Both the position numbers and the translations under genes were made by a program. DNA of 64,000 bases from Dicyema japonicum (Eukaryota; Animalia; Dicyemida), in the NCBI GenBank assembly GCA_011109175.1, contig RDEW01000023.1, positions 1 to 64,000 on the forward strand, in the 5' to 3' direction. Position 1 is the first letter of the stretch; each line of letters starts with the position of its first letter. Under the pieces are notes generated by a model that did no database searches, was not told the DNA's origin, and saw only the letters and a list, made by a program, of their open reading frames with translations. Positions 4,090 through 62,799 of this stretch are shown piece by piece.

Positions 4090-4572
4090 TCAAATAAAAG
4101 CATTACGGAAAGTAGTGTTTGACTGGGCGTAAAATACAATGATTGCATTCTTATTGGTAGTATTAGTGAGTGAATATGAGTTACCTAATAATAAATTAAT
4201 GACTGACCTGCCTTTACGTTAAAATACGAATATTGGTTTGCCTGTGTTGGAGGACTGTCATTTATTTGTAATTTTACTGATCCTTCGTTTATAACACAAG
4301 ACTATGTTATAATAATAATAACTAGGTCTATGTTGTCCAAATTGCACATTTCTTTCCTTTTTGAACCATATATTATCATCTCCCCTGAGGCTATTCCATT
4401 TCTTCCACTCATGGGAAACATGAATATTTCGTACGAGTCACATTTGTGGTGCAAATCATTTTTGTTAAGAACGTGACCTGTCAGTTAATCGAAATTACAA
4501 CATTTTGATGAAATCTTTGTTTTCTTCTTAGACCGTGCATCCTTCTAAAAATAACAATAATCACACCACCAT
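4090..4572 (-). CDS. ~129-aa CENP-C/Mif2-type cupin-domain protein; 5 exons, introns 25/24/21/23 nt
   Basis: Removing introns 4545-4569, 4478-4501, 4302-4322 and 4185-4207 gives an open frame ...GIASGEMIIYGSKRKEMCNLDNIDLSCVINEGSVKLQIND...YFNVKAGNSYSLTNTTNKNAIIVFYAQ, which follows the CENP-C C-terminal cupin pattern (G.L.L, G.V.V.I, F.VP.GN.Y.I.N....A.L.F). Confidence 0.65.
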
Positions 4573-7499: not shown

Positions 7500-9560
7500 A
7501 ACCCAAAGACCACCAATCAATTCGCTAAATTAAGTTATCTTAGCCTCCAACATATCTCGATTTCTCTTCTAATGCTTTGCCAACCGCGTTCCTGAAGTGT
7601 CTTCATTTATTTCTGCAGAGGAATTCTATCGGAGTGCACTTTTTAATGCCAATCTGAATTCCTACGCATGAACCGCTCTCTCTGAATGGGATTCCTAGCT
7701 CCTTGCATATATGTAGTAAGCCCTGGCCATTTCTTACCGTCGCCTTTTCTGAAAGGAGACTGTGGACGGATATGGTGTCTGATTGCATATTTCGCATGAT
7801 TCTCCGCCTGAGAGAGTTAATACGCTCGACTCTCGTAGAAGGAATAGCGAATTTCCAAGCATAACAGGCATATTCAACCGTCAGCACAATGACTAGAAGA
7901 TATAATTTGCTGATACAAGCAGTAGGTGGGAAGGGGCTCGTCTTTATAATGGCTTTTAATACGTTCCATTTTCAAAGACCTTTGGTTAATAAATAAATAG
8001 AGACCCTTGGTTAAAATTTCCTCCATGTGACTGGAGAACGTCATAAGAGAGTCGATTGTCACTCAAAGGAAGGAGACTTGTCCTTGCAGCAATAATTAGG
8101 TCGTCCGCGTAAGATAAAAACAGTGTCCTGATCATGATAGTAGATAAATCGTGTAGAAATATGTTAAATAAGAGAGGAGACAGAAAGGAGCTTTGTGGGA
8201 CCCCATTCGGGAGTAATTTTGATTTTGAAGTAATTTTTCCAATTCGGACTCTTCCATGTCGGCCATTTAAAGAAATTTTCAAGCCATAGCATGATGTTCG
8301 GATGTAAGTTTTTAGTTTAAGATCTTCTTTGTTAGGAGTGTCATCGGAACCGTGTGGAAGGCTTTCTGTATATCTATAGACATCAGAGCCGTCCGTAAGT
8401 GCGTCTTCATGTTGAAGACGTCTGTGATGAACTGGGAAACAGATTCCTAATGCGTCGTTGTAGAACGGCTAGATCTGAAGCCATGTTGAAAATCAGGAAA
8501 TTGTAGAACTGAAAAGATTAACATTAGTACAAGTTTTTTTAACACTTTTGACAAGGCATAAGTTATAGAGACATGGTGGTAAGAGGATGGTCTTTTGATT
8601 TACAGGCTTGAAGATTGGAGTAATTCTTCCATATATTTGGTATTGTGTGGGAATTTATAAAATAGTTATACAGTCTTGATAACATGATAAAGTCATTGGT
8701 GTTTGATATGAATAGCACAGACACCGTCGGGGCCACAGGCTCGGGTAGAAATTCTTTTTCACATCGTAGGTAGTGAAGAATGTAGTATATCCTGTCTTTG
8801 TGGACCACATCGTTTGTCATGCAGAGAGCAAAAGAATTTCTGGCTGATCGACAAATAGTATTTCATAAGGTTATTAGCAATTTTCCGTGCGTGTTACGGG
8901 ACAAGGGTAACGATTTCTACTCCGCCGCCATCTTTCTTTGTGAGGATGTTGATACTTCTTAGTGTCTTCCAGAAAGTTCCAAATGTGTTCTTGTGGCATA
9001 TTTGACCAACAAGCCGACTCCACTAGTGTCTGGTTAGCATGAATTAGTCGGGAAATTCTGTGATTTTGAGAGCGTGTGGACTATATAGAGCCATCTGATT
9101 GCATTCCGGTTTTCTTCAAAGCATCCCGTTTCTTGATAAATTCCAGAATGCCCAAAAATGGTTTCGGATAGAATTTTATGTAAGAGGATAATGTGATGAA
9201 CATTCATTTCGAATAACTTGACATTGTGGCTGTCTTGTCAACAGGGAAGTCTTCCACAGCGAGGCCCAATAGATAATTATTCACATATGTGCTGAATCCA
9301 AACCAATTTGCCTTCGAATAGTTTTTTGAACTTTGTAGAACATCTTGGCAGATAAATAGATCTTTTGAGTTTCAACACAATTGGGTTATGGTCGCTTGTA
9401 AAACCATAACTTAGGTTCTACATCACCAGACAGAGTAGTAAAGAGAAAACGGGGAATTGGTAGGCCACCCTTCTGAAGGTCTTAAAAGGGTAGAGAAGGT
9501 CGAACGGTTTTCTTCCATCACATGTTTTGACGTTAAAGTAGAGAATATAGAAATCATCAA
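7500..9560 (-). mobile_element. Family A single-ORF APE-RT non-LTR element (Ingi/Vingi-like), degenerate
   Basis: EEP remnants (KGGL, DHNPI), RT LPNGVPQ.SFLSPLLFNIF and SYADDL, C-terminal VEYACYAW, ending in the family A stop/tail motif near 7540. Confidence 0.8.
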
Positions 9561-14580: not shown

Positions 14581-14599
14581 TTTTTTAATATTTTTATTA

Positions 14600-14890
14600 T
14601 TTATTAACCCTGGATACAACGAGAAAGAATTTAAAGTAAACGACTAATTAAGTGTATCCTGTAAGTGAGTCCATTTGGAATCAGCATAAATGGTAAGACT
14701 TGCAGTTGTGGAAACTCCTCCAGTGGATTAGGGGAGAGCAAATGATCCTTTTTCGTCCGGCCTGGCACTGGGCGCCACCTAGACAGGTGGATCACATGAC
14801 GCTACTCTAGTAAAAAGAGAGAAGAGGAACAGACAAGGAAGCATAAAACTTCAACCAAATTACCACGCAGCACCTCATGGCGCCACCAGG
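14600..14890 (-). mobile_element. SINE-like non-autonomous element S1 (head hairpin, HDV-like fold, family A tail)
   Basis: Homologous along its length to 30856-31172. Fold core at 14742-14803; tail GGATACACTTAATTAGT...GGGTTAATAAAT. Confidence 0.75.
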
Positions 14891-19304: not shown

Positions 19305-19720
19305 ATCCTTGGTAGGCCACCATTCTGAAGATCAAGAAGGGTAGAGAAAGTAGAACGGTTTTCTTTCATGCAGAACTTGCACTGAGCGCCACCACAACAA
19401 CAGGTAAACCTCATGACACCTCGCTAAATGAACTATCCCAGACTGAAGATCATGAGGTATACGCATTCAGACACAACATCCATCCCAAGTCTCCTTTCAG
19501 AAAAGGCGACGGTGAGAAACTGCCAGGGCTAGGAAACCCATTCAGAAAGAAGGTAGTTCATGCAGAGGAATTCAGATCGGCATTAAAAAAGTGCACTCCG
19601 ATAGAATTCCTTTGCAGAAATTAAATTAGACACTTCGGGAACGCTGTTGGTTTACCGACGGAGCATTCGAAGAGAGGTTGGAGGCTGGGATCACTTAATT
19701 TAGCGAGTTAATTATTTCTT
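19305..19720. mobile_element. Family A fragments: EEP piece (minus) abutting a 3' end (plus)
   Basis: 19310-19370 matches 9460-9520. 19400-19720 matches 7540-7800 in opposite orientation and ends GGGATCACTTAATTTAGCG. Confidence 0.7.
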
Positions 19721-19821
19721 TAAAATAAATAATCAATAAAATTCTTTAGATGACTATTCTTTTTATGACTTGTTGCATAAAAACACAAGTATATGACTTG
19801 GTTTCTCAATTTAAATTTCCG

Positions 19822-20050
19822 TGTGGTGCCATGTGGCAACCTGACTTTTTTATATCCTATGGTGGTGTCATTGGATCCACCTTTGGATCCACACGCCCAA
19901 TGTCTAGCCGGAATTTAAAGGATTCATCTATTGACCTCAACTTCCCAGACAACGCTCTCTGGATCACTGTGCTTGGGTGAGAGTTCTATCGAAACGCGTC
20001 AAGATCAAGAATTAGTTTGGTTTTGCCCTTGGTCTTTGGAATAATTTATT
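19822..20050 (+). mobile_element. SINE-like element S2 (degenerate fold)
   Basis: GTGGTGCCATG head, TGGTGTCATTGGATCCACC, CGCCCAATG..GCCGG, and tail GATCAAGAATTAGTTTGG...GGTCTTTGGAATAA shared with S4. Confidence 0.65.
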
Positions 20051-24329: not shown

Positions 24330-24585
24330 ACCATCCAGCCATATGAAAAGTCTGGATGGGGAAGAGAAAATGGTTCTTTTGGATGTTATTCGACACTGAG
24401 CTGAACCACATGACGCCAACATTTTAATATATTATCATATCGTCAATACAGGAAAGCCTTGAGTACTTTGGAGGACACAAGAAAAATCTCTCGATCCTTT
24501 TGAGGTGTACCGAGATCACTTAATTAGTTGGTTTACTTCTTTCTTGGTGTTCCTTTCTCGGGGTTAATAAATAATAAAAATATTA
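24330..24585 (+). mobile_element. Family A 3' end
   Basis: Ends GAGATCACTTAATTAGTTGG...CTCGGGGTTAATAAATAA, near identical to 49000-49070 and 43870-43920. Confidence 0.7.
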
Positions 24586-24799
24586 ATAGATGACTATAGG
24601 ATTTCCAAAAAAGGTTTATTTATTATTATTAAAAAGCACTCCCCTAGAAACATAAAATTAGTTAAGTTTCCCTTGTGCCGTATTCAAAATCATCCTCTCC
24701 GTCAGCCTCCACCATGATCCTCTGTTGCTTAGGTCGTCCGCCCAGGTTAGTCTCATACCAACCACCGATAGGTGTCGCGAGCTACAGACGTTAACTTGA

Positions 24800-30640: not shown

Positions 30641-30855
30641 CAGTAGTAGATCTAATATTTGTGCTATTTCCTCTCTATTTTTTAGTTCAATGTTCAAAGC
30701 TTTCAGTCTAAACTTATCCTCAGTAGTTTATCGATCAGACTTTTTGAGTTCGTTTTTTTCCTTAGATACTGGCGACCTGGCATGTCCCCTGGTGTAGTTA
30801 AGGTTATGTTTAGGTACAGATAGTGATCTCGCATCCAAGATAGTGAGGTTTACAT

Positions 30856-31172
30856 TTATTTATTTATTAACCCCGGATACATCGAGAAAGAAGTTAAAGT
30901 AAACAACTAATTAAGTGTATCCAGTTTCCACTTCTACAGAAACAGAGTCCATCCGGAATCAACATAAAAGGTAAAAAACGTCCATAGTTGCAGTTGTTGA
31001 AACCCCTGGAGTGGGGGAAAGCAAATGATCCTTTATTCGTGCCGGCCTGGCACTGGGCGCCACCTAAACAGGTAAATCACATAACGCCACTCTAATAGGA
31101 AGAAGGAGGAGGAACATACGAACAAAACTGAAACTTCAACCAATTAGCCACGAAGCACCACATGGCGCCACG
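30856..31172 (-). mobile_element. SINE-like element S3, complete, with 9-bp TSD
   Basis: GGTTTACAT at 30847-30855 and 31173-31181 flanks a 317-nt unit that starts GTGGCGCCATG and ends in (TAAA)n. Fold core at 31025-31088. Confidence 0.85.
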
Positions 31173-31312
31173 GTTTACATAAGCTTGCTAAGAAGACATT
31201 TAGGGAAACCACCATCCAAACAACATGGGATCAGAATTAAAAGAGTTTATTAAAATATATATTTTTTTAAATTATTTGTTAAATCTAAATTTTTAAATTG
31301 TTATATTTGTTG

Positions 31313-31799: not shown

Positions 31800-34700
31800 T
31801 TACTTCATTTATTTTATCTAAAGGAGGGTACTTTGTCATTTAAATTACGCATCATTATTTTCTAGGTTAGTCTGCCACTGTGACCCTCGAGTTGGAGTTG
31901 TTACTACTCGACAATCTTTATTACAAAACCGGATTAGGAGTTAGATGTAGGGGGTTTTAATTATTCCGCCTTTGCGGCCTGGACACTTCTGACGTCCCCC
32001 ATTAACACACTCTTTTGTTAATAAATCCTCCCCCATCTCCATAATTAATGTGCGTTCTTATGTATGAATCACAAATCCTGTTTTCTACTATTTGTTTCAC
32101 TAAGGTAAGAATCTCGTTTTCTTCAAAACGCCGCGTAGTCTTCTGCTCAGGGCTAACTTTATCACTGATCTTCTAGACTTCTCCAACAGTGATCCTTTCC
32201 TTCTTCGTGGATGGTACCACACCTCGCATCCATACAACATTTCTGTAGGATTATCCTCGTATAAATGAAAAGGAAAATCTCCCTACTGACGGCCAGCTTA
32301 TGTGTGCAGAGGAGAGCCTTTTTTCTACTCAGCTTGATGTCTACCAGAAATGAGCCTTCTTGATCGACTGCTACACCTAGGTATCAAAACGATGAACTCT
32401 TGGAATTCCTAGTGTACAAGGTTATACGTGATTAGTAAACGGCTGATTCTCATAAAGTTTGACTTCTCTGTTGACAGTTTCATCTCTCTCCGGACACACC
32501 AGTCTTGCACTCGGTCAATAACCATCAGATTCTTCTCTCTGAAAGAGTCGACCTCCCAGACATATCCATGATTAGGATGTCGTCCGCGTATATTAATAGT
32601 TTCGAGTTAGGGTCCGACGGAGTTGGGAAATCTGATAAGAAGATTTTAAACAACAGCGGGCTCAAGACAGAGCCTGCGGAACGCCTCTCCTCAGTAAGAC
32701 ATCTCTGGATACATTTCCTCCAATGCGCACTTTGGAAGTCCATCCCGTTAGAAAGTCCCTTAGCCATATGAAAATTTGTTTTGGAATATCTGCAGCGACA
32801 AGCCTTGATAGGAAAACTTAGTGCCACACGCTATCAAAGGCCTTGGATAAATCCAGGCATATCATGTTTACTTTTTTTTTTTTTTTTTTTAATGGAGCAT
32901 TAATTTAAACAATAGAAGTCAGGTAGTTGCCGCTCACCGCGTGGCTGTTCCCTCTCAAAATTGCGAGCGAAATTCGCTCAAATAGCCAGCGGCGTTCGCG
33001 GAGATCTCCAGTGCATGAGGTGATCCGGTTTCCAAGACGTCCGAAAAACTCGAGTGTAGAGGGGGAGTAGGATCCGGAAGTCTCCATAGCAAGGGGAACA
33101 AATTTGACATCATCGGGAAGGTCGACGTATTTAACGAGTTTGGCCTTCTCCGCCTTTACGGATGCTGAACAGGCCCTTGTAGCACTCTCGTGAAGATTTT
33201 TCTGGGCGAACGTGTCTGTACATGTCACATCCCAAACCAGTGGTTTCCCGGCCTCAAATGGAAATATGGTCATCCCGTCCGGTCGTTTCCCGTCACTTCT
33301 GCATAACCCGACCGGTTCAAGAATGGCCGAGTATCCAGCAGCATCCATAGCTCGCCTGACAATTTCATTCAGAGCCTTGTGCCTTGGGGATCTGCCAGCG
33401 CTCCTCCTGCAGGCGAGAGGGTGCAGGCCATAGCAGTCTATCAGGATGCCACATCGGCACGGGTGAGGTACACATACTTTTAGTCCCAGCCGCAGAGAGA
33501 TACCAGTTCTAACGCATTCATCATCCAGAAAAGTGCCCAAAGCTCCATTGGGGATGGCGTTTAGCCAAGCTCCGCTCTCAGGGGAAGCCCCGAAAGCAAA
33601 CAAGCGCGTCGGTGCTGATTGGCAGATTCAGTAGGAGTCCAAATGATTTCCAGCATAATAAGTTGTCCAGGTTTCGCTGGCGATCTTGGGAAGGAGGCAG
33701 GGGGAGGTTGGTGGCATTCCAGGCTTCTCGTGCGTGGATTATCTCTTGGTCAGTTGAGAATTCGGGTGGGGAGTGTAGAATCCTCCTGACCAAAGGTTCG
33801 CAGGCCGTGAGTGATGATGAATAAGCAGGAAGTGAGACGTCCAAAGTTCGACGGATTCCAAGACCCCGAATCTAACTGGGAGTGTAGCCTGCATCCATGT
33901 ATCATCGTCGAATCGGACATTAAATATTTGCTCTGTCGAGCTGAGGAGAGACAAATCAAAATTCTCGAGCAGCTCCAGTTGAGAATAATATGGAGCTGTC
34001 CTTAGTAGATAGGAGATTCTCTGGATGTTGAGACTTCTTTTCAATAGGAATAGTGCTGTGTGCAAGTCCAGCAGCTGTAATCTTTCCAGCGAATCGCATA
34101 GGAGTCGTTTTTTGTCAAGGAGGACATGCTTCATCGCATTACTAGTGATCGGGGATCCAAGAAAAATCAATTCATTTTCAGGGGTCGAAATCCCACCGGG
34201 AAACAAGGAGTAAAATTTTTGAACAATTGAAGAGAAGTCATCGTCAGCAAGACCACAGTTTGTTATTTCACATTTCGTTATATTCAACTGAAGACCCACC
34301 TCGGACAGCGCGGGGTGAGTACTTCTAAGTCCTGGAAGACCGTTTCCGGGGGACCTCCTAAGACAGCGTCATCGAGGTACCAGATGTTGAGTGGGCATCT
34401 AGAGAGCTTCGTGATCCTCTCAATGCCGAGGGAGAACAGCAGTGGTCCGAGGGGTCGCCCTGTTGAACACCTGAGGACGATGGAACTATGAAATCCCCGT
34501 GCAATAGTGATGAAGGTTTTCCGTATGAATAATTGACCAGTTCAAATATGTACGGACATCTTTCCTTGCAGGCCTCCAGAATGCAGTCTCTTCTTAAGCT
34601 GTTAAAAGCGTTCTTGATGTCCAGTTTTACCATAATGTGCCTTTTAAAGTCTTGAATGCTGCTGTTCCTGAATCTTCTGACGGAGTGAACGGCTGCCTCA

Positions 34701-37700
34701 CATCCAAGACGAACTCCGACTCCAACTTGACTGGGAAGTAAGGATTTTGACAAGATTGACGTAGAAAATCTGGAAGCAATCTTGGCTGCTAGTCTTCTGA
34801 AAGTGAATCCGACCGCGATCGGGCGGATTCCACCTCCCTTCTTGTCGACGGCAATCAGACTAGCCGAAAAACAAGATATGAAGTATCAAATCAGGCAAAT
34901 GTCCAGATAATATCCTGTTCATAAGAGAAGTGAGTGAGTATGAAAGACGACTTGCTTGGTCTCCAATAGTCGGTGAAATAAGGTCTTTAAGATGGCCGGG
35001 CCTTAAGCCATCGAGACCTCCACAGCTACTTGGTGCAAAGTTCCAAAACGCCGTGATGACATCCTCAGGCGACCTGGTCAAAGGGGTCGCTTCTGATGGG
35101 GGCTAGCAATGGCGTAGGTCATTCGGAGAGGGTGGATGTTTCCCCAATAGAGTCTTGTAAGTATCAATGGTTGGATTGCGTGGTCCATCTGAAAGTGAGA
35201 GGGCCTTCAATGCGGATCGGGTTCCTCCTTCAAGCAACTTCGATCGTACGGTCTTTCTTAGGCGAAGAATCTCCGTTTCCCGAGTTGAACTCCGAGTCTC
35301 AGTTGAACGGATGCAGAAGGACGTGAGGTCCGTAAAGTGAGTTCCATCCATAAATGCGCGGATGTTGTTCTTCATCTCAATCGAGAGAGACTCTTTCCAT
35401 TGCGATCTTGAGGAGCCAAGAGCGAAAGGAGCAAAATTAAACAAACGTATCCAGTCGTTTATAGAGTCGGAGCGGAGTGCATTGTCGATTGCTTTGGTTA
35501 ATGCTTCGGCAGCTAGGGGGCGGGCTGCTTTAGGGATCTTCACCGGGATACTCCTCGATGACCGGCGTTCATTGATAATTTTGAGCAGCGAATCTGGATC
35601 CAAATGGGAAAGATCTGCCCCGGGGGTACATGAACTCGCGTGACCATTAGGAAACCCCGAACCAATTCCAAGGCACGAGCGCAGTGCCATACCCAAGAGC
35701 ACGGATAGAGGCCTGACAGAGCTTCAAACACCCGAGGTGAAAGAAGACTCCACAGGCAGAACAAGAAATTCCAAACTTTCTCAAATTGCTCATGTTGCAG
35801 GCAGAGCAATTAGACGATGACTTTTCGAGTAACATTCCACTGAATCAACAATAGGCGAAAATCAAGAATAGGAGAATAGTCTCAATAGGCGAAAATAGTC
35901 AATAAGAGAAAGTCAAAAATAGGAAAATAATCACAATATGCGAAAAACAACAACACACAACGACAACACGTTTTTTTTTTTTTTTCATGTTTACTTGTTT
36001 CTTGAATCTCGATCCTTTCAGTACCTCCAAATGCATTTGATGAATGCAATCTGTACTTTCCGGCCTGAATCCCCATTGTTCCGCAAGGAGGAAATTGCTC
36101 TCTTCTATATGCCGACTCAGTCTTTCGAATACGATTCGCTTAATAATCTTAGATATCTAGCATATGAGGCTGATCAGCCTATAGTCGAGAGGATCCCTTC
36201 CTGATTTTCCTGGTTTTAGTATCATCTTGACTACAAAGTTTTTCCATCGTTTTGGGAAATATCCGTGCTTAACACTTGCGTTGAACAGGTTTTTATGACT
36301 AGCAGTAAGGTCTCCGATCCTTCTTTGAACATTTTCATTTTGATGTGGTCGAAGCCCGGAGCTTTTGCTTTGCATGTTCTAACTATTGCCACTACTCCTC
36401 GAGGGTGATTTTTTTCTCAACATCCTTGAGGTCGTTTATTGAGTAACTACAGAGTTCTAGTGACTTATCCATTTGTTCACATGGGATCAATGGCAGTGGG
36501 TTGACTCCCTGGATTTTTTCCAATTGGCTATGAAAATTGCCGAGGCTTCTCCTACAGAGTGCGAGCTCCCATCCGGATTGTTCAGGACGATCTTACTTTC
36601 ATCGTTCCTCTGACCAGTTACTCTCTTGTAAATTCTCCATAAGGAGGGATTTTTAGTATCCAACTTGGTTGCCTCGACTCTCCATCTTTGCTGCAGAGCT
36701 AATTTCGTTCTCTCTTCTATGGCTCTTTTGGTTATTTTGAGCCGACTGGTGAGAGCCATTAGGTCCTTCCAATCAACACATCTTCTTAGTGTAGTTCTTA
36801 GTCGATTTCTTTCTTTGATCAGTCCCAAGGTAATAAATGAAATGTCGATACATTTCTTGCGGCTTGCATTCGAGAATTTCTTCTTAGCAAATAGTCGCAA
36901 ATATGTCCCTATGACGTTTGTGAGATCACAATTCATATTTTTGATTTCATTCGTTGACATATGTTCCTCCGTCCACCTTTGAATTCCAGTAGTGTTCCCA
37001 TTCGATGTGTGAAATTTCGTTTTTTTATGAAAACGTCTTCGATGACATCTGGTACTAGGTTGAAGACTAGTTCCTTCGGTATATGGTCACTACCAATATC
37101 ACACATAGTTCTTGGTCTTTCCACATAAATGTACAATAGCGGTGATAGAATGAACACACCAAGCAGGTCTCCACCATGGTAAGAGAAATGGTTGGGCTCA
37201 TCCGATGTCATGACCTTTATCGTAGAAAAGGGTGGTTCCCGTTCCAGCCGTAATGCCTTCGGCCCATGGTTGTATCCCTCCATTGTAGTAGTATTGGTCT
37301 TTTTTACCTTGGTCTCGTCAATTTTGGTGGCTGTCTAAAGTAGTGTTAGATGTTTCTTACTCAAAATCGGGCATTCACCAACACTATCTTCAGACCTCCT
37401 TTCAATTGTTTTTAGGTGGTCTGGGCTCTCCATTGCCAGGTCCACCATATTCTTTCAATCCACTCCAAAAATTTTACTAAGTTCCTTTAATCTTGAGATT
37501 ATATCTCTTAATTCCTTGGAGATCTTCTCAGGCATGTTATTTCGGGTCTGCCAAACTGATTCTTGTGCCAGCTGAACCGGTTCATTGTTAATATTGCGGG
37601 GACTGGTTAGTCTTCTTTCTGCGGGTTTCATTGACTCTGAGACAGTGTTTATTTTCGACGGTGTTTCCTTGTTGCATTCAACTTTAGTTTTTTCCTTCTG

Positions 37701-40748: not shown

Positions 40749-41807
40749 TTAGGTTCCAACATATCCCATTGGTTGACAAAATCCCTTAAAGAAATCAAAA
40801 AATCTATTGTATCCCCCATCCATCAAATATATGTTATCCAAAAATATTTGATTCGAGTTGCAAAGAGACATGAATTTTTTCATTCTTGAAGGTCCTCTTT
40901 TAGAGGAAAACTCACAGTAAAAGATAAAAATATAAAATTTCCTAGGACTCGTTTGATGTTCAGAACACAAATCCTTGTACACCTCCTCAACTCTCGTGTC
41001 ATCAGGAAGGAACACGGAGTACTTGACGTGACCATTTGAATATTCATTCTCAGAACGACAGTCAAAAAGAGAGATCTTGCAATGTGTCGGAAAAGAAGAG
41101 TATAGAGACACTATGGCAGACACTGTATATCCCGTAACAGTCCTTAGAGCACCCCGCATGTCATATCCCCCATACTTGCAGCCTTTACCAGCGTCGTTTT
41201 CTAACTTTTGAAAAAATGTGTTGAAAAATGCGGACTGTTCAGAGGGAGAAAGGTCAACGAGTCTCTTCCCATCGACAGAAACGTCGAATTCCTCAAAAAC
41301 TGAATCCACAGGAATCAAATTGTCGTCCAACAAAGGCTCTATTATCTTTATGGTGAAACTCTTCTCAAACACAGAATCCAAAGACTCCAAAATCATACTT
41401 TCATCGCTATTGGAGTCAAGTGTATCCATTGCTTCTTTAAACATTACATCCAGGTTCTCAGAGCTCGAACTCTCTTCAAATACTGGTTGATTTAGGTCCC
41501 AACTCTCTTTGAGAATCTTTTTAGAACTCATCAAAGTAGGAGGAAACTCAAATCTTTCCTTAACAACGGGTGGGAATTTCTTGAAACTGAAGTAATTAAA
41601 TCGTTTTGTCTGGTTGAAGTATCGTAAAAGGTTATTATCCGCAATGGTCTTTAAGCGAGACCGATGGGAACTCTTTTTTTGAGAAACATTTTCCTTATTA
41701 GAACGCTTCTTTGTACGACCTTGAAGATAATATGCACAAGTACATGCTGAATGGCCGACATTGGTCACGTCTTTGAACTTTTCATTCAAGTGATTCCTTT
41801 TACTCAT
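40749..41807 (-). CDS. CDC25: Cdc25-family phosphatase, single 352-aa exon; true C-terminus may extend to ~40697 via a 1-nt shift
   Basis: Rhodanese motifs LFDCRSENEYSNGHV, IFIFYCEFSSKRGP (CX5R), IYLMDGGYNRFF, CQPMGY. Confidence 0.85.
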   Translation of the reverse strand: MSKRNHLNEKFKDVTNVGHSACTCAYYLQGRTKKRSNKENVSQKKSSHRSRLKTIADNNLLRYFNQTKRFNYFSFKKFPPVVKERFEFPPTLMSSKKILKESWDLNQPVFEESSSSENLDVMFKEAMDTLDSNSDESMILESLDSVFEKSFTIKIIEPLLDDNLIPVDSVFEEFDVSVDGKRLVDLSPSEQSAFFNTFFQKLENDAGKGCKYGGYDMRGALRTVTGYTVSAIVSLYSSFPTHCKISLFDCRSENEYSNGHVKYSVFLPDDTRVEEVYKDLCSEHQTSPRKFYIFIFYCEFSSKRGPSRMKKFMSLCNSNQIFLDNIYLMDGGYNRFFDFFKGFCQPMGYVGT

Positions 41808-43469: not shown

Positions 43470-43920
43470 CCCAAGATCAACTTCGGAAAGGGGCGAGACC
43501 AGTAAAGAAATACAAAAGTCTCAAAAGACAGTTCATTTTTGAACCGGTAGTAGTCACCTTGGGGATCATTGGAAGTAAATCACTAACCCTATTGAATTGT
43601 ATCGGAAAGAGGAAAAGGGAAAACGTTGGCTCACTGAGCGCAGTTCCTTGCAAATCGTGAAGGGAAATGAGTTTTCAATTATGAAAGCAAACAGCTAAAT
43701 TAAAGAATAGTCCGATTGAATATAAATCACAAATTCATAGGAAGCTAATTTAACTCCAAGGTATGTTATTAAGACAAATTGAAAGAATCATAGTTACCTT
43801 TCTGGAAGGACAATTGTCTCGCCAAATTAGTATCGGAATTATTTAACATTTTCAAAGCAATATTATTATTTATTATTTATTTAATAACCCGAAAAAGGAA
43901 CACCAAGAAAGAAGGAGCTA
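43470..43920. mobile_element. CRE 3' relic (plus, 43470-43700) and family A tail (minus, 43860-43920)
   Basis: FIFEPV.V.TLGIIGSKSL...IVKGN, and aataacccgaaaaaggaacaccaagaaagaagg, the reverse complement of the 49020-49060 tail. Confidence 0.6.
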
Positions 43921-44105
43921 TTAAGTTTGTTTTTTGTTTTTCAAAGCAATATTGAAAAATCAGCCAAGATCTCAATATAAATATCACATTATCAAGGAAT
44001 GAAAAATAACAAATTAGTAAAATATAAATTTAAAATATTAAATATTTAAATATAAAATATATTTACCCATTTATAATTTGTGGTTTTATTTCTTTATACT
44101 AGTGA

Positions 44106-44470: not shown

Positions 44471-44899
44471 TTTAGGTTAATTGGCCTATATATGGATTTA
44501 TTTTATTTAGGAATTTTGGTTTACTGGTCCCCTACGTCCAGGAATCTCCAAATTTGACAGGGATGATCCCTATTGGGAGTATAGAATTTCGATTGGTGGT
44601 AATAGACTACATGTAGTGCTCCTCATTTTGAGCCTTAGTCTCTGCATACAAGTCTCAGAATAGAGAATGTGTATATTTAGAATTTATTAGTAATGAAATA
44701 AGCCGTTTTGGAAATCCTATAGTCATCGATTAATTTTCTTATTTGTTAGATACTTAAATAGGAATGACTATTGAATTTCCATGCATTTTCGACCCACAGC
44801 CTTTAGCACATCAGACCAAACATGTTTATTCGCTGATAAAACCGAAAGGCTCATAAAATATCGACCCCAGGATATCACATTTTGATCCTTGCCGTAGAA

Positions 44900-46581
44900 C
44901 CCTCCAGAGTACTATGATTTACACCTTCCTTTTATCCGAGGCTAAGTTTAATCTAAGTACTGTCTGTTCCACCGTGTTTCCCTCGTGGTCCTAAAATAAA
45001 ATACCCATCTAATCAGGGTATTTTCAAAATCAATAGAGGTAAATCCATTCCTCAGAATTAAAGCCTCCAGAGGCGTTCTTTCCACATGTCTACTGTTTGT
45101 CACATCAAGAGCTCTTTCCTGACTGGATACGATTCTAACAAAATTAGTCCAAGAGATGAAAGGAATTCATGATGCGCATGAGTAGAAATGACAGGTTTGA
45201 TGTACAGTTTGTATAATAATTCGAGAACCGGATAGCCTCAGATATTCCATAATCCTAGGACGCTATTCAGAAGGTTATTCTCGCATATGTCATGGACTTT
45301 TCGGGACTGGTAGCTAAATGGTTCTTTAATAGAAAATCGTTGAGACGGGAGGTTTTTTTAAAACCTTAAAAAAGCAGACAGGATGTTCCGATCTGAGAAT
45401 CAATGACGATGTCGTATGTTGAGATCGACCATTAGTAGGTTGAATAGGAAGGGGAATAATGGTTATCCTTGGAAATACCATCGTGAAATGGATTTTGACA
45501 TTCAAATACAAACACATCCTCTCCGACCGCTAAGGAAACTAGATAACCAGATTTTAAAATTTCGAAGGATTCTTTGAAAGTTTTCCAAGAATTTTTCTCG
45601 ACACTTAATCGAAAACGAGAACATTATGGAACAAAGTAGTCGTTATCTGCCTGTGCGAAAATCCATATGTTCGGCTGAGGGGTAAGTAGAAATATACCTC
45701 TTCTCTTTAAATCCATGTTGAAATATTATATACGGAAAAGAGTCTTTAAATTTTTAAAGAAACAGCCTCTCCGTGATTTTTGACATAACGGGACTGGCCT
45801 ATAGCAAGTCGGATCCTTCTTCTTGATTTTCATTATAGAGGAATGTGTGCTTGCTTCAAAAGGTCGTGATTCAAGATAATAACATTGTGGTTTCTTCTAG
45901 AGTTATACGATACCAGGACGTTATCGCAGACAGGGAGGGAGAGCAGAGTGATGTCGACCCTGTATGGAGTTTTGTATTTTTCGACGGATCACCGATTTGC
46001 GTTATCAGCAGTTTCCCTCTTGAATCGGGAGGTTGTTTTGCCAGCCAAAGGGGGAGTTTATCGTTCGTGTCTCCCCAATGACCACGTCATTCAAATTAGA
46101 TAAATTAGATATGTTGGGGATTACATAGCTCTGAACCAGGTTGAGGCACGCAGGCGATTTTCCCTTTTGATGCTACAAGTGAAATAGCAATAATTTCGGT
46201 GACATCATCATTTCCTAATAGGCTCTTTACCTCTAAAGAGATGTCCATGAATATAAGGTTTTTCATGTAAAAAGTGAGATCTCTCAGGTCACCTGTATAA
46301 TATTATATCCAGAGGTTTAGGGATGTTTTTCGGGAGTTTTGTCTCTTGAATTATGGGAACGTCAATCGTAAGTTCCGTCAAAAGAGAACGTAGTTCAAAT
46401 AACTTGCCTCTTATTCCGTTGATGTTTAGTTGTAACACAGTCTCTTGTGGTGAGCTGAAGCTGAGGACGAACTCAGGGGCGTCACCGGGAAGAGAGTATC
46501 CTACAGATGTAAGTGTCTAATAGTCTTTTTGGAGGTACATTATGTGCCCTCTAGGGATATAGTGGTAAACCACACAACGTC
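44900..46581 (-). mobile_element. Family A 5' portion (structured 5' end, EEP, start of RT)
   Basis: TVLQLNING, KQNNLPI, GDANR, GSDH.PV, W..G..IPL....S.SYRPI.L. The 5' end carries the same fold as 59787-59862. Confidence 0.8.
46521..46581 (-). ncRNA. Partly deleted copy of the family A 5' HDV-like fold
   Basis: GACGTTGTGTGGTTTACC...TAGAGGGCACATAATGTACCTCCAAAAAGACTA. P2 and P4 retained; P3 and P1' deleted. Confidence 0.45.
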
Positions 46582-48499: not shown

Positions 48500-49999
48500 T
48501 CTATCCACCGGACTCGTCCTCTCCCTTGTCGATCTGGGATCACTTACCTGAGAACCTTTTATTTCTTTTCTTTGACCATCCGAACCTGAAACTTTGGCTT
48601 GGAAACTTCCTAAATGAAAGACGAGTACAAGTACTCCGCAACAATATCGACGATTGAGTACGCCTGTGCCTCATGGGCCTATGGAGCTTCGATATCAAAT
48701 TCACTCAAGATCAATACCCTAATTGGAAAACTAGCACGTCAATCGAATCTACCCCCCGATCTTTTCCCTCCAATGCTTGACCACGCCGCAATCAAAAATA
48801 ATGGCTCCGGCTTCATCTGTCTGTGTGGCCAAGAAACAAGTCGTTTCTTCCATTCAAGGCTAAAGGCTTCAAATACACGAAATTTGGGGAAAAACCCTCC
48901 TCTTCAAACCCTAATGAAAGATGATCGTCGTTTATTCAGGAAAGCCGTGGGTACTCTGGAGGAACACAGGAAAAACCTCTTGATCCTGTTGAGGCGTACC
49001 GGGATCACTTAATTAGTTGGATTACTCCTTCTTTCTTGGTGTTCCCTTTTCGGGTTATTAAATAAATAAAGTGCTCCGCAACAATCAAATCAAGATCTCG
49101 CTATTTCCCAAATGGGGTCTCTCAAGGCTCCCCACTATCACCCCAACTCTTCAATCTCTACATAAACGACATGCCATAAACCTGTAATGAAAACTGCCTA
49201 ATCCTCTCCTATGCCGACGATATCATTTTTGCCTCCAAGAACAGAAGCATTCAATCAGCGACTCAGTCCGCTCAACAAATGCTCGACAACTTGGAACTAT
49301 GGCTCTCGAAGCGGAGACTCGACACATCAGCAGCAAAGTCCTTTGTCACACTGTTTACTACCTACAAAAGACAGCTCTGTATCGAACCAAAAGTCTTTAT
49401 GAAGAACGAAGCTATCTCTATTAACAAAACACCGAAGATTCTGGGAGTAACCTTTGACTTGGGACTCACCTTTATCCGACATGTTGAAAACAAAGTAACT
49501 TCTGCTTTAAAGAAAATGAAAATTTTAAAAGTGCTCTCAAAAACACTTAGAGATCAAACTGGGATCCTTGCCACGATTTATAACAATTTATCCGACCAAC
49601 GATGACGAATGCAAGTCCTTCATGGGCAATGCAGATCTCACGATCTTCCTCATTGAAACTATCCGCAATCGAGAAGACTGCAATAAGGTTAATTGGACCA
49701 GAACATAAATCCAGCCCATTGAAAATTTCTTAATCGAACTACAACGGAAACTCTTAAAGGAGGCTAGTTCACCGAGCTGTCCTCTATTCCATACTATCGA
49801 ATTATCTACAATCATACAGAAATTTTGAGCCGATGTCATGTCCAATGAGAAGAGCAGTTCAGGATTTTCGACCCTGCCGGACTCGTCCTCTCCTTTGTCG
49901 GTCTGGGATCACTTAGTTAGATGAGAACTTTTATTTCTTTCTCTTTGACCCAGTGATCCTGGAAATAATAATAATAATAATTGACCCAGTGATCCTGGA
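48500..49999 (+). mobile_element. Three head-to-tail family A 3' pieces
   Basis: Tails at ~48540, ~49005 and ~49910. PQMGSL..PTLFNLYINDM, YADDI, PKILGVTFD.GLTF, IEYACASW. Confidence 0.8.
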
Positions 50000-58777: not shown

Positions 58778-59015
58778 TTGCGCCATCCTGGAGTTGGTGG
58801 TAAACTCCTCCAAGAAAAGGAAAAAATAGTCATGGATTTGTTATTGGCGTCATTGGATTCACCTTACTGAGGGACGCCCAATGCCTGGCCGGCACAAAGA
58901 GAATCCAATTATTCTTTCCCGGGAAACTGGTTACTTGGAGACAAGTTCTGGAATGGTGGAACGAGTCAGGATCAAGGAATTAGTTTGGTTACACTTGGTC
59001 TTTGGAATAATTTTA
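58778..59015 (+). mobile_element. SINE-like element S4
   Basis: TGCGCCAT head, best-paired fold core at 58846-58909, tail GGATCAAGGAATTAGTTTGG...GGTCTTTGGAATAA. Confidence 0.7.
58846..58909 (+). ncRNA. HDV-ribozyme-topology nested pseudoknot (SINE type)
   Basis: P1 GGCGTC/GACGCC; P2 TTGGATTC/GAATCCAA; P3 CCT/AGG; P4 TGCC/GGCA; J4/2 CAAAGA. Canonical L3/P1.1 is absent. Confidence 0.55.
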
Positions 59016-59786
59016 ATTTAATTACATTAAAATAATTGATCTCGACATCATCCTCAACCAGATATCTCCTTATGGGATCCAACTCAGCTTCTCTGTGGGC
59101 GGATGACTTTGAGAATATAAATTTGAGTGGGGTGATGTATACTATTCTCATAAGAGACGTCCTAGATGTGTACTGTTGGGAGTTGGACTGCCTGCACAAG
59201 TCAGCAAATTCCTTCCCATTTTGTCGGATAAGGTATGGTTGGCTTGCCAACCATAGAGGGTGTTCGGCGTTGATATCCCCACAAATGATCACGTCGTTAA
59301 GGAAGCCAAAGTGGATAAATTGGGCATAGCGTAGTGCTTCGGGCAAGAATCGGGTGAGGCACGTAAATGTTCAAAAAGGTAACTTTCATTTGTAGTTCCA
59401 ACTGAGAATGTGTTGATTTCAGAACATCGTCGTCTCTCTCTAGATATTCTTCACCACTGAAGTGATGTCCTGCAAATTTAAGGTATTTCCGATATAAAAT
59501 GAGTAGACCACCACCCCGGTTCTTCCGGTTAATCCGTATTGACTTTTATCCAGGAAACAGCGTGATAAGAATGTTAAATGGGAGTTTTGTCTCTCGAATC
59601 AAAGCCACGTCGATCTTCAACTCGGCCATTAGAGAGTGCAGTTCCAGTATTTTGCTCCTTACTCTATTGACGTTTAGTTGTAGAACTGTGGTTCATTCCT
59701 TGTGGTGGACTAGGGGTTCCTTCCCAGTAGTTAAGCTTAGAGTGCTTGCCACCGGGGAGACAGTATCCTCGGAGTTAAATATTTAA

Positions 59787-59862
59787 TGGTTCACTTTGGA
59801 GGAACATTAGGTGCCCTCCAGGTGTTACCAATAATTACAGAATTGGTAAACCACATAACGCC
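59787..59862 (-). ncRNA. HDV-ribozyme-topology nested pseudoknot at the exact 5' end of a family A element
   Basis: P1 GGCGTTA/TAACACC; P2 TGGTTTA/TGAACCA; P3 CCAAT/ATTGG with loop TCTGTAATT; P4 (TGG)AGGGCA-CCTAA-TGTTCCT(CCA). G-U pairs occur on this strand. Confidence 0.55.
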
Positions 59863-62092
59863 ATACTAAAAATTAATAATATCAGAGACCACGGTTACAC
59901 AAACAAACTAACTAATCACGTGATCCTAGCACGCACTAGCAGGGACCTCATCTTTGCCCGATGCTCTTCCTTCGACCCCACAAGCACGTATTGGTCGAGT
60001 GATTGCACCTTCGCAGTCACGACGGGCGCGTTCCATGGTTCATTCGTATCAAGTCTTCAAGAGACATTGGTGGCTGGAACTCTTCAGAAATCCAACGTTC
60101 CGTGATTTTGGAGGCTCTTTTCCGGCTAGCCTCGATCTTCAAGACATTCGTCCAAGAGATGAATGGGTCCCATATACCACATGCATAAGAGATGCAAGGT
60201 TCAATGAATTGTTTATATATAGTGCTCAAAACAGAATGCTTTTCGATCATCCAGAAGCCTGTGAGGCATTTCAGAACATTGGTTTTTTTTCGAATTTCGT
60301 AATTACGTTTTCAACATGGGGCGAGAATGACATATGCATGTCAAAAGATCTTTTGAGATTTTCTGAAAGGAATAGCTTCATTGTTTGCCTTCAGTTCGAC
60401 CGTCCGTCTTCCCAGTCTCTTGTCTGAAGTAAATAAGGTTGTGACGGACTTTACACTGCTGGCAGTTAAGCAATTCTTCGATAGCCATTCGTCAAGACGG
60501 TCCAGGTTTTCTTGCAATTTCTAAAGTGGCAATTTGGATGTCCTGATCGCGTGACGCAATGACGATGTCGTCAGCATAAGTTAGAATAAAATCATTTTTG
60601 AAGTCTGGAATGGGGAGGTCCGCCACGAATAGATTTAATAAAACTGGAGACAAAAGGGATCCTTGGGGAAACCCATTAGGGAGAACCCGTGAAATAGACC
60701 TTGACTGGCCAATGCAGATGCGTACCCTCCGACCACTAAGGAAGTTAGCTAGCCAGAGTTTGAGCCTTCCAGGGATCTTTGGTAAATTTTTCAAATGAGA
60801 ATCCTCCTTGACAGAGTCGAAACTTTGTGGACGTCTATGGAGCAAAGTAAAGTCTTCATTTGTCCCTGCCTGTGCGAGAAACCATACCTTATAAAGTTAG
60901 TAAATGCCAGATAAGTGGGTCGAAGTAGACCTCTCTTTTTAAAACCATGTTGAAATGACAACTCCGGGAGGAAATTTTTGATTTTCGCTAGAACCAACCT
61001 TTCCAGAATTTTCGAAACCGAACACAATAACTCGACCGGTCTGTATGAAGCAGGGTCCTTCTTTACTTTACCGAGTTACAAATTTGACGTAGGTGGGCAA
61101 GCTTCCATAAGGCTGGAATATAATTTTTGTTAATGGAGTGGTTGAATATCCTCGTTAATACAGCGATTCCATTGTCTCCCAGATTCTTTAGAAGGATCAT
61201 TGGGATCTTATCTGGTCCGTAAGAATAGGTTTTTTAATGACTTTCAATGCATATCTCACGTCGTTTTCAGTGAAGTAAATCGTATCCGGTTCCTTTTTCG
61301 TTTTACTAAGATATTTCGGGGATACATCAGACTTCTTATGGTCTTTATGGGATATTTTCACATAGAATTTTATTAGGTTGTTTAAGTCCTTCTGGCTGTG
61401 GTTCACCTCGGACGATCTTTCATCCTTTCTTGAGGCGTCTCGGATGGTCTTCCAAATTTCAGTAGTGGGTCTATTTCTATTCAACGAGGAGAACACATGC
61501 TTCCATCTTGATATTTGTGCTTTTACCTCCCTGTTTTTACTTTCTTCTTGAATTGGACGGTTGATTTTCCAGCCATAGAGGGTGTTTGGTATCCCCTCCA
61601 ATGATCACATCGTTTAAGAAAACCAAAGTAGATAAATTGTGTAGTGCTTCGGACAAGAACCAGGTGGAGGCACACAGACGTTCACAAAGGTAATTTTTCT
61701 AATTGTTGTTCCTAGTGAGACTGCATTTACTTCAGTAACATAGTCGTCTCACAATATATTCTTCACCACTGAAGTGATGTCCACACGTTTAAGGTCTTTA
61801 CGAAATAAAATGAGTAGGCCACCACCCCGCTTCGTCTTCCGGTCATTGAATGGAATCCAACGAACACCGGGGTAGGATTGATCAAAGGCAGTTTCGTTTC
61901 TGTATCAATGCCACATCGGTCTTCAGCTCCTCCATGAGAGAGGGCAGTTCAATATTTTGCCCTTTACTCCATTTACATTTAGTTGTAGAACCGTGGTCTG
62001 TTTCTTGCGGTGGGTTAGGAGTTCCTTCCGGGTAGATGAAGCTAAAAGTGCGTGCCGCCGGGGAGACAGTTTCCTTGGAGGTAAATGTTTAA

Positions 62093-62162
62093 TGGTTCTC
62101 TTTGGAGGGACATTAGGTGCCCTATAGGCGTTACCAATACTTACAGAATCGGTGAACCACAT
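62093..62162 (-). ncRNA. 5'-truncated copy of the family A fold (P1 5' strand missing)
   Basis: TGGTTCA...CCGAT/ATTGG, TAACGCC (perfect complement of GGCGTTA), GGGCACCTAATGTCCC, AGAACCA. Confidence 0.5.
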
Positions 62163-62799
62163 TATTATTAACCCCAGGCTTACCATTGTAAGCCCAGTAC
62201 AAACAGTCATGACTAACTAATCCAAGGAAGTAACCAAAGGGAGAACATCTGCTTGTGCCGACCAAATCCATCTTCCAATACTTCATTACAGGCTTCCGCT
62301 TCCGAGAAGAGGTGGAGAAGTAGGTCCGCCCTCTTCCATTTTTGTCCCACGTCCTACCCTCGCGGACATCACTTCATTCTTTGCGGAATAGTTTTCATAA
62401 TGCAATCTTCATCAGAGGGTTTGGTCAGGGTAAACCAGAGAACGGTGCGCTAAAATTTATATATATAACGCTAAAATTCTTGGACAAAATAATATAAATT
62501 AATTAACAAAATTAATATTTAAATATAATTGATTTGTGATGGCTAATGTGACTCATTTTATGGAATACACTCACTACTTTACATCCATTATAGAAAAGTT
62601 CACTCAAATAAAACTAATTTTAATGACATCCTTAATATTTTGGATATTGATTTGCTTGCTGCTTCTACAAATTATATGGAGTAAATACTCAGAGACTATC
62701 GAAGAGAATCTGTTCAAATGTAACCCCCATTAATATTTGTAGTTCGGACAGATAACCCAAATTATGATTTTAAGAAATTTGATTAGATTTAAGTAAAAC

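Follow-up and report, generated by a model that had tools for sequence, protein, structure and literature searches.

The first 64,000 nucleotides of contig RDEW01000023.1 of the dicyemid Dicyema japonicum (NCBI GenBank assembly GCA_011109175.1; this whole stretch is called the window below) contain four short interspersed elements (SINEs), S1 to S4, which fall into two related families, S1/S3 and S2/S4. We regard these as probably being bipartite SINEs of the LP type, which have captured a structured module from the 5' untranslated region (UTR) of long interspersed elements (LINEs), the helices of this module following the order seen in the ribozyme of hepatitis delta virus (HDV). All copy counts given here come from the one window and were obtained by sequence comparison and computed folds. 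As far as sequence can tell, the feature itself is real, in that a LINE 5' module of HDV topology has been captured by two SINE families; cleavage by it is at most predicted. In two helices of the module, P2 and P4, compensatory changes have preserved the pairing of the RNA-sense strand.

An initial annotation of this DNA had proposed four non-coding units, and all of them were found in their places by direct reading and by BLAST searches of the window with the units. The alignment of S1 with S3 extends from end to end at 76% identity, and S2 and S4 have in common a 56-nt tail with 87.5% identity. Between the two families the only alignable parts are a 5' head of about 17-20 nt and a core of about 65 nt, the latter with 73-74% identity over about 55-60 nt in BLAST. 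S3, the best-preserved copy, is made up, in this order, of a head hairpin, a spacer, the core fold, a body, a LINE-type tail and a (TAAA)n-like end, its 3' terminus being AATAAATAAATAA. It lies between the two identical 9-bp copies of a target-site duplication, ATGTAAACC in the minus-strand reading; this duplication and the (TAAA)n tail, both reported earlier, can be read directly from the sequence. The span previously given for S3, 30856-31172, is correct as to location and one base too long, as the duplication still includes 31172 as its final base and the element starts at 31171. The scoring of duplications that had been proposed for the other copies yielded no convincing ones in the flanks of S1, S2 and S4. 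The units show the properties expected of SINEs: they are short, non-coding and dispersed, S3 has a duplication, and their 3' ends are common to LINEs. The homologies of head, core and tail bear out the earlier view that they are non-autonomous retroposons built on LINE modules.

A profile search of the window with the core counted six further copies, those named here being C5, F24, E59, E62 and E46; the count of four copies in the initial annotation is thus right for S1-S4 as elements and too low for the core. C5 and F24 are of the SINE type, and C5 has a downstream body and tail different from those of S1-S4 and a 5'-truncated relative at 9457-9518(-). E59, E62 and E46 are of the LINE type, and the initial annotation had not connected them with the four units. 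Alignment identifies their minus strand as the one homologous to the SINE core, and on this same strand APE-like and reverse transcriptase (RT) open reading frames (ORFs) lie downstream; the fold accordingly forms the beginning of the 5' UTR in LINE copies of the single-ORF APE-RT kind. In these copies the domain coincides with the 5' end or is only a few bases away from it, and the stretch homologous to the approximately 65-nt SINE core comprises about the first 78 nt of the LINE 5' UTR. The presence of a homologous fold at the 5' ends of E59, E62 and E46 agrees with the LINE-SINE partnership inferred previously. A protein homology search with the APE-like ORF of E59 gave no match.

Positions of the elements, their parts and the related LINE features in the window
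Feature	Positions	Strand	Basis or remark
S3, best-preserved SINE copy, 316 nt	30856..31171	-	full-length alignment with S1
S3 target-site duplication, 5' copy	31172..31180	-	direct reading
S3 target-site duplication, 3' copy	30847-30855	-	direct reading
S3 head	31152..31171	-	homologous to LINE 5' terminus (P1 and P2 5' strand)
S3 core fold, P1-P2-P3-P1'-P4-J4/2-P2'	31024..31088	-	direct reading, descriptor, parse
S3 3' tail	30856..30925	-	homologous to the LINE 3' ends listed below
S1, older copy of the S3 family	14597..14887	-	core 14741-14803
S2, second family, decayed	19822..20050	+	core 19864-19927
S4, second family	58778..59015	+	core 58846-58908, P2 of 8 bp
C5, fifth SINE-type core, no recognisable head	19354..19420	-	BLAST, profile, fold parse
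F24, decayed SINE-type core	24361..24421	-	P1, P2 and P2' kept; P3, P1' and P4 deleted
E59, LINE-type fold, 5' end of a LINE copy	59785..59862	-	alignment, fold parse
E62, LINE-type fold without the P1 5' strand	62091..62168	-	5'-truncated against an upstream tail
E46, third LINE-type copy	46519..46581	-	P3' and P1' deleted; P2 and P4 kept
APE-like ORF downstream of E59	58972-59346	-	Pfam
RT ORF of the E62 LINE copy	60492-60845	-	Pfam
LINE 3' end matching the S1/S3 tail	24512-24578	+	alignment, profile
LINE 3' end matching the S1/S3 tail	49000-49070	+	alignment, profile
LINE 3' end matching the S1/S3 tail	43861-43925	-	alignment, profile
Segment adjoining E59 P1 on its 5' side	59863..59930	-	tail type common to S2/S4

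Eight units were parsed by hand into P1, P2, P3, L3, P1', J1/4, P4, J4/2 and P2', all parses being exact substrings of the window. The fold strings earlier given for S3 and S4 proved exact, and the HDV helix order claimed for them stands as well: a relaxed descriptor of this order (P1 of at least 6, P2 of at least 5, P3 of 3 and P4 of at least 4 pairs) accepts both S3 and S4, and the same parse fits eight units. Defects occur in two of the copies, S1 having lost one base of P4 and having an A-C mismatch at the first pair of P1, and S2 having a 4-nt insertion before P1' and no J4/2 C. P2, of seven pairs, is paired in 54 of 55 cells (98%), and five of the seven pairs have changed on both sides (G.U/U-A, U-A/G-C, G-C/A-U, U-A/U.G/C-G and U.G/C-G/U-A). 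It is recovered by RNAalifold without guidance, no shuffle among 500 was as good, and pairing falls to 24-51% when the partner strand is slid. P4 has been swapped as a whole helix, being TGCC/GGCA in the SINE cores, GAGG/CCTC in the LINE copies and TGCA/TGCA in C5; here none of 20000 shuffles did as well. In P3 the CC/GG is invariant, and a third pair is optional. Of the paired cells in P1 and P2 taken together, about one fifth are G-U, which places the fold on the sense strand of the element; read on the opposite strand, pairing drops to about three quarters of the cells. The fold parse, RNAalifold and the shuffle tests thus uphold what had been claimed of P2 covariation and of wobbles that appear as G-U only on the element strand. 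The SINE cores form a group apart from the window's LINE copies, sharing one P4 and differing from those copies in P2, from which we infer that at least some compensatory changes arose within SINE-type lineages or in LINE subfamilies absent from the sample.

The heads, too, go back to the LINE 5' end: over roughly their first 17-20 nt, S1-S4 can be aligned with the 5' terminus of E59 and E46, where P1 and the 5' strand of P2 lie. In the SINEs this segment forms a hairpin of its own, GGCGCC and GGUGCU closing a loop AUGU or AUGA, and in S2 this hairpin is preserved through a change from C-G to U-A. All four SINEs retain the head upstream of the core, the complete fold lying 60-85 nt inside the element. 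ARAGORN found no tRNA in the window, and Rfam gave no match to a tRNA, 5S or 7SL head at E<=10 over S3. As a separate observation, the spacer between head and core of S1, at 14804-14871(-), aligns to the 3' tail of LINE-A (p<0.002 against mononucleotide shuffles). The idea that S1 and S3 are dimer-like fusions of a mini unit with a full unit found no confirmation in the tail profile or in the S3 spacer (31089-31156(-)), and it is kept as a lead.

At the other end of the elements, the last 65 nt or so are common to S1, S3 and the LINE 3' ends listed in the table. The tail of S2 and S4 has its best match (p<0.001) at 59863-59930(-), a segment in which we see the 3' tail belonging to the LINE copy E62, and it matches the S1/S3-type tail only distantly (p about 0.001-0.002). 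The single tail family formerly assigned to all four units is therefore present in S1 and S3, and S2 and S4 carry a distinct, E62-like type. Judging from these matches, S2 and S4 would have both of their ends in common with the fold-bearing LINE. Such combinations of core and tail are an instance of the module shuffling typical of SINE superfamilies.

These observations can be accommodated if the two families of short non-autonomous retroposons were assembled from the modules of single-ORF APE-RT LINEs. The first part would be the head of about 17-20 nt, descended from the LINE 5' terminus and now forming its own hairpin; the second, the structured domain of about 65 nt, homologous to roughly the first 78 nt of the LINE 5' UTR; and the third, a LINE 3' tail of about 65 nt with a short AT-rich repeat at its end. 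By analogy with other LINE-SINE pairs, the tail is likely to provide the recognition by the LINE reverse transcriptase that target-primed reverse transcription requires. The domain would be an RNA element with the topology of the HDV ribozyme, probably descended with divergence from a ribozyme at a LINE 5' end, which the SINEs may keep for the help it gives in cis during retrotransposition. It could bind a LINE protein to the 5' part of the template, or protect the 5' region of the RNA as a stable pseudoknot; a promoter or processing activity like that of the L1Tc Pr77 is a further possible role. Because all four copies retain their heads, cleavage at the internal P1 in the SINE context would have to be weak, conditional or absent.

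Certain points weigh against this interpretation. The covariation of P1 is not significant, column shuffles of the eight parsed units pairing equally well (P=0.62), and P1, hence the pseudoknot, rests on conservation and wobble-compatible change rather than on statistics; the covariation analysis called for earlier, made on the window copies, is thus positive for P2 and P4 and negative for P1. Only nine units from one window are available, several of them decayed, and they are phylogenetically related, so that the shuffle statistics overstate their independence. The tail of S1/S3 comes from a LINE family distant from the fold-bearing E62: the RTs of E62 and of the LINE whose 3' end is at 24578 have an identity of only 28%, which means that S1 and S3 join the core of one kind of LINE with the tail of another family. 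Their LINE-SINE "pair" is really a mosaic, and the 5' end belonging to the tail family itself lies outside the window. Finally, the function in cis is a supposition of ours. The uncertainty of P1 also invites the proposal that the HDV order is a chance reading of an ordinary three-way junction, in which P2 encloses two hairpins and P1 does not form. In favor of this, minimum free-energy folds use either P1 or P2 and never both, and the relaxed descriptor finds about 115 hits on the two strands of the window, or about one per kb, so that the topology by itself is weak evidence. However, P1 is paired to 90% in register as against 28-41% when slid, it is perfectly Watson-Crick in the composite LINE version, and its pairs 5 and 6 change among T-A, T.G and C-G by way of wobble intermediates; moreover, when the same 79 nt are shuffled with their dinucleotides preserved, the whole topology turns up by chance in only 0.3-2% of cases. 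We accordingly give the three-way junction scarcely any credence.

A weightier alternative, which on balance we still hold to be unlikely, sees in the fold an active self-cleaving ribozyme of the HDV-like kind. It would free the LINE 5' end from read-through or stacked co-transcripts, and in the SINEs it would cut either at the internal P1 or, given pairing of GGCGCCA with P1', at the head. Its helices have the HDV order, P1 is of 6-7 bp and G-initiated, P3 is of 2-3 bp, and a C directly follows P4 in six of the eight units (E59, E62, E46, S3, S1 and S4, the S3 sequence being CGAA). The CGAA or CAAA opening formerly ascribed to J4/2 is to this extent retained; the C is replaced by T in C5 (CG to TG) and is lost in S2. 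In our own reading of the sequences there is also an alternative register in S1, S3 and C5, in which P3 is ACC/GGU, L3 has 6 nt and a P1.1 of 2 bp is possible. This P1.1 would pair UG of L3 with CA of J1/4, and in S4 another position of L3 could be used; a strict descriptor requiring P1.1 accepts S3 in the alternative register. The earlier caveat that P1.1 is missing is softened accordingly for S1, S3 and C5; in the LINE copies J1/4 (TG or TA) has no clear partner. Head-to-tail stacking of LINEs would make processing useful, and the P1 of E59 does adjoin the tail of an upstream element. In S1 and S3, P1' pairs without a mismatch with the head strand GGCGCCA, at -13.3 kcal/mol as compared with -8.5 kcal/mol for pairing with the internal strand, and R2 ribozymes tolerate a J1/2 of hundreds of nucleotides as well as a shifted P1 strand (PMC3774820). 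It is hence conceivable that a cut falls near the head, but the pairing is not counted as evidence, since the head's own hairpin is closed by these bases too and explains the head CC equally well; the idea that this CC evolved to pair with P1' is weakened on the same ground.

Against an active ribozyme stands the absence of any ribozyme match in Rfam, both over the whole window at the gathering score and over S3, S4 and E59 at E<=10 with HDV_ribozyme, CPEB3, drz-Agam, HDV-F-prausnitzii and other models. In R2 and HDV ribozymes some 15 nt of P3 and L3 are conserved as an active-site block, which has a 3-bp P3, an L3 of about 7-8 nt and invariant residues (PMC3774820). The L3 sequences here are unrelated to one another and of 3, 6, 6, 7, 9, 15 and 15 nt, and this block is not found in them. 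The bases of the putative P1.1 are invariant, and the strict descriptor is not enriched, with 18 hits against 23-27 in shuffles. A T occupies position -1 of P1 in 11 of 12 units and the SINE copies start 2 nt upstream of the head GGCGCC, which indicates that the conserved unit extends past the predicted scissile bond; the retention of the head in all four SINEs argues in the same direction. With no Rfam match, a variable L3, a P1.1 without covariation and a P1 that is not significant, membership in the HDV-like ribozyme family, to which the initial annotation had likened the fold, is not supported. We take the HDV topology to be real, and catalysis in the SINE context to be probably weak or absent. 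As a side observation, a TAG at -7 to -5 recurs upstream of P1 in E59 (59863-59869), C5 (19421-19427) and the cores of S3 (31089-31095) and S1 (14804-14810), and the conserved unit may start several bases before the predicted cleavage site. A relation to twister or its T-variant, suggested by a GCC..AAUGCC..GG resemblance, was rejected, as the motifs described for it (L4 GUCCCAAGC and L1/L2; PMC8501958) are absent from the core and the Rfam twister model has no match in the window, S3 or S4.

It might also be asked whether the 5' module serves mainly as an internal promoter at the DNA level, the RNA fold being secondary. Head and core both derive from the LINE 5' terminus, the elements have no tRNA, 5S or 7SL head, and the first base of the SINEs is a purine. 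There are parallels: the LINE-derived 5' head of about 70 bp in mollusc LP-SINEs has been proposed as a promoter (PMC4758252), and Pr77 combines promoter and ribozyme (PMC3383444). Compensatory changes and wobbles confined to G-U nevertheless point to selection on RNA pairing and not on a DNA motif, and the full core lies 60-85 nt inside the SINE and not at +1, so that a mainly promoter-based explanation appears very unlikely. More daring, and in our judgement distinctly doubtful, is the notion that the fold represents a working non-canonical branch of HDV-like ribozymes, with a variable L3 and either a UG:CA P1.1 or none, which serves the LINEs and acts as a switchable cutter in the SINEs, where head and internal strands would compete for P1'. 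On this view it may also be the same as the unexplained 5' module of about 70 bp common to Nimb, I and RTE LINEs and mollusc LP-SINEs, and would furnish an RNA-structural explanation of that module.

Returning to bipartite SINEs with a captured LINE module, the "undescribed LINE-SINE pair" of the initial annotation is too strong a phrase for elements of this kind, for which there are precedents (PMC5786205, PMC4758252, PMC4035085). SINE bodies derived from the 5' UTRs of RTE and Vingi LINEs have been described as bipartite non-autonomous LINE derivatives (Kojima 2018, PMC5786205); SINE2-1_AMi, for example, carries positions 2-74 of Vingi-2_Gav (PMC5786205). Like these, the present elements have a LINE 5' segment in the body and a LINE 3' end as the tail, and exchange modules between families. 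They differ from them in having a fragment of the LINE 5' end as the head, in place of a tRNA or 5S head. Kojima further argued that an active 5' ribozyme would truncate headed SINEs (PMC5786205); here, by contrast, a fold of HDV order is kept and covaries despite that predicted truncation. The cephalopod Ceph-SINE superfamilies resemble the present ones in sharing a central domain of LINE 5'-UTR origin, and are unlike them in having tRNA heads. Neither the Ceph-domain motif CCTTGGGAAAG, with up to 1 mismatch, nor the 23-nt RTE-like Ceph segment, with up to 3 mismatches, has a match in the window (motif and segment both taken from PMC5786205).

The mollusc LP-SINEs have a LINE-derived 5' module of about 68-70 bp, which is also present in Nimb-17_LMi, I-3_DR and RTE-9_CPB (Matetovici 2016, PMC4758252); they include Lsa_2, the Haliotis, Ostrea and Saccostrea SINEs and the pectinoid MESC SINEs (PMC4758252). 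The likeness to our elements, as judged from the published descriptions, lies in the lack of a small-RNA head, the LINE 5' module of about 70 bp and tails ending in short tandem repeats. Unlike in the LP-SINEs, the full module is internal here, only its first 17-20 nt or so standing at the 5' end, and no RNA fold has been proposed for the LP module. Pr77/L1TcRz is an HDV-like ribozyme and promoter found in L1Tc/ingi, NARTc, RIME and SIDER, with two signatures in SIDER2 (PMC3185411, PMC4035085). It offers a parallel in its HDV-like 5' module of about 77 nt, shared by a LINE and its short partners, and in the second partial copy inside some short elements. Yet Pr77 cleaves in vitro at +1, exactly at the 5' end, and in our case there is an offset of 2 nt at the 5' ends, the copy that is complete lies inside the element and the fold is a predicted one. 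R2 SIDEs keep the 5' double-pseudoknot module and the 3' UTR and are internally deleted (PMC3774820, PMC3414825). Retention of a 5' module and of a 3' end is common to both systems, and R2 has documented compensatory evolution of P1 and duplication or shift of the P1 strand. R2 differs in its conserved P1.1/P3/L3 block of about 15 nt, in the place of which there is here an L3 of 3-15 nt and no such block, and the elements of the window are not specific to ribosomal DNA. The present case is thus a variant in which a LINE 5' fragment serves as the head, the full module is internal and its pairing is visibly maintained, the particular families being compared by their published descriptions.

The function of the conserved central domains of SINEs is a long-standing open question (PMC4824008). 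Here such a domain can be traced to a LINE 5' terminus and appears to be under selection for RNA pairing, and whether it cuts, binds a LINE protein or protects the RNA becomes a testable question. The finding also bears on Kojima's argument excluding 5' ribozymes from headed SINEs. In engineered Vingi and RTE templates the payload is flanked by cognate 5' and 3' UTRs, and a double-pseudoknot fold protects RNA 5' ends (PMC13708176), so that the module is of relevance for gene-writing templates of this design. If it is only the relic of a decayed ribozyme, it would add one more case to the known module shuffling.

The LINE copies also show signs of head-to-tail stacking. A LINE-type tail, the one read as belonging to E62, is followed immediately by the 5' fold of E59, and a second tail, at 62169-62235(-) and ending GGGGTTAATAATAA, adjoins the 5'-truncated E62. 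A further repeat family begins right after AT-rich sequence of the (TAAA)n type on two occasions, at 24573-24633(+) and 44683-44743(-). This arrangement suggests insertion into tail microsatellites or template switching. Another repeat family is found at 7515-7821(+) and 19428-19713(-), as well as at positions 4134-4352 of a locus of Octopus sinensis; it has an A-type tail at its end, on the plus strand near 19687-19721, and C5 adjoins its truncated start. The Octopus sinensis locus, which was reached through RT homologues, contains repeats of the window at 69-80%, one A-type tail and no core, and two further loci with RT homologues, in unrelated genomes, have no core either. One contig, JAZHCG010296073.1 (GCA_044240345.1), encodes at its end a 337-amino-acid RT with 51% identity to a LINE RT of the window; its GC content is 59%, and its genes are otherwise of bacterial type (ABC transporter, phosphonate-binding, PgpA), so that the placement of the RT could be due to chimeric assembly or contamination. 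A scan of metagenomes with an 18-nt core pattern returned 120 loci, all of them chance GC-rich matches without extended similarity.

Two observations concern other parts of the window. An ORF of 352 amino acids at 40749-41807(-) ends in a rhodanese domain, and protein-language features make it Cdc25-like and place it nearest to a mollusc cluster; a word-index protein search found no homologue of it at E<=1e-5. The region 32000-37000 is a GC-richer block (41-47%) with several minus-strand ORFs of 150-230 amino acids, none of which has a Pfam match, and it may be another mobile element.

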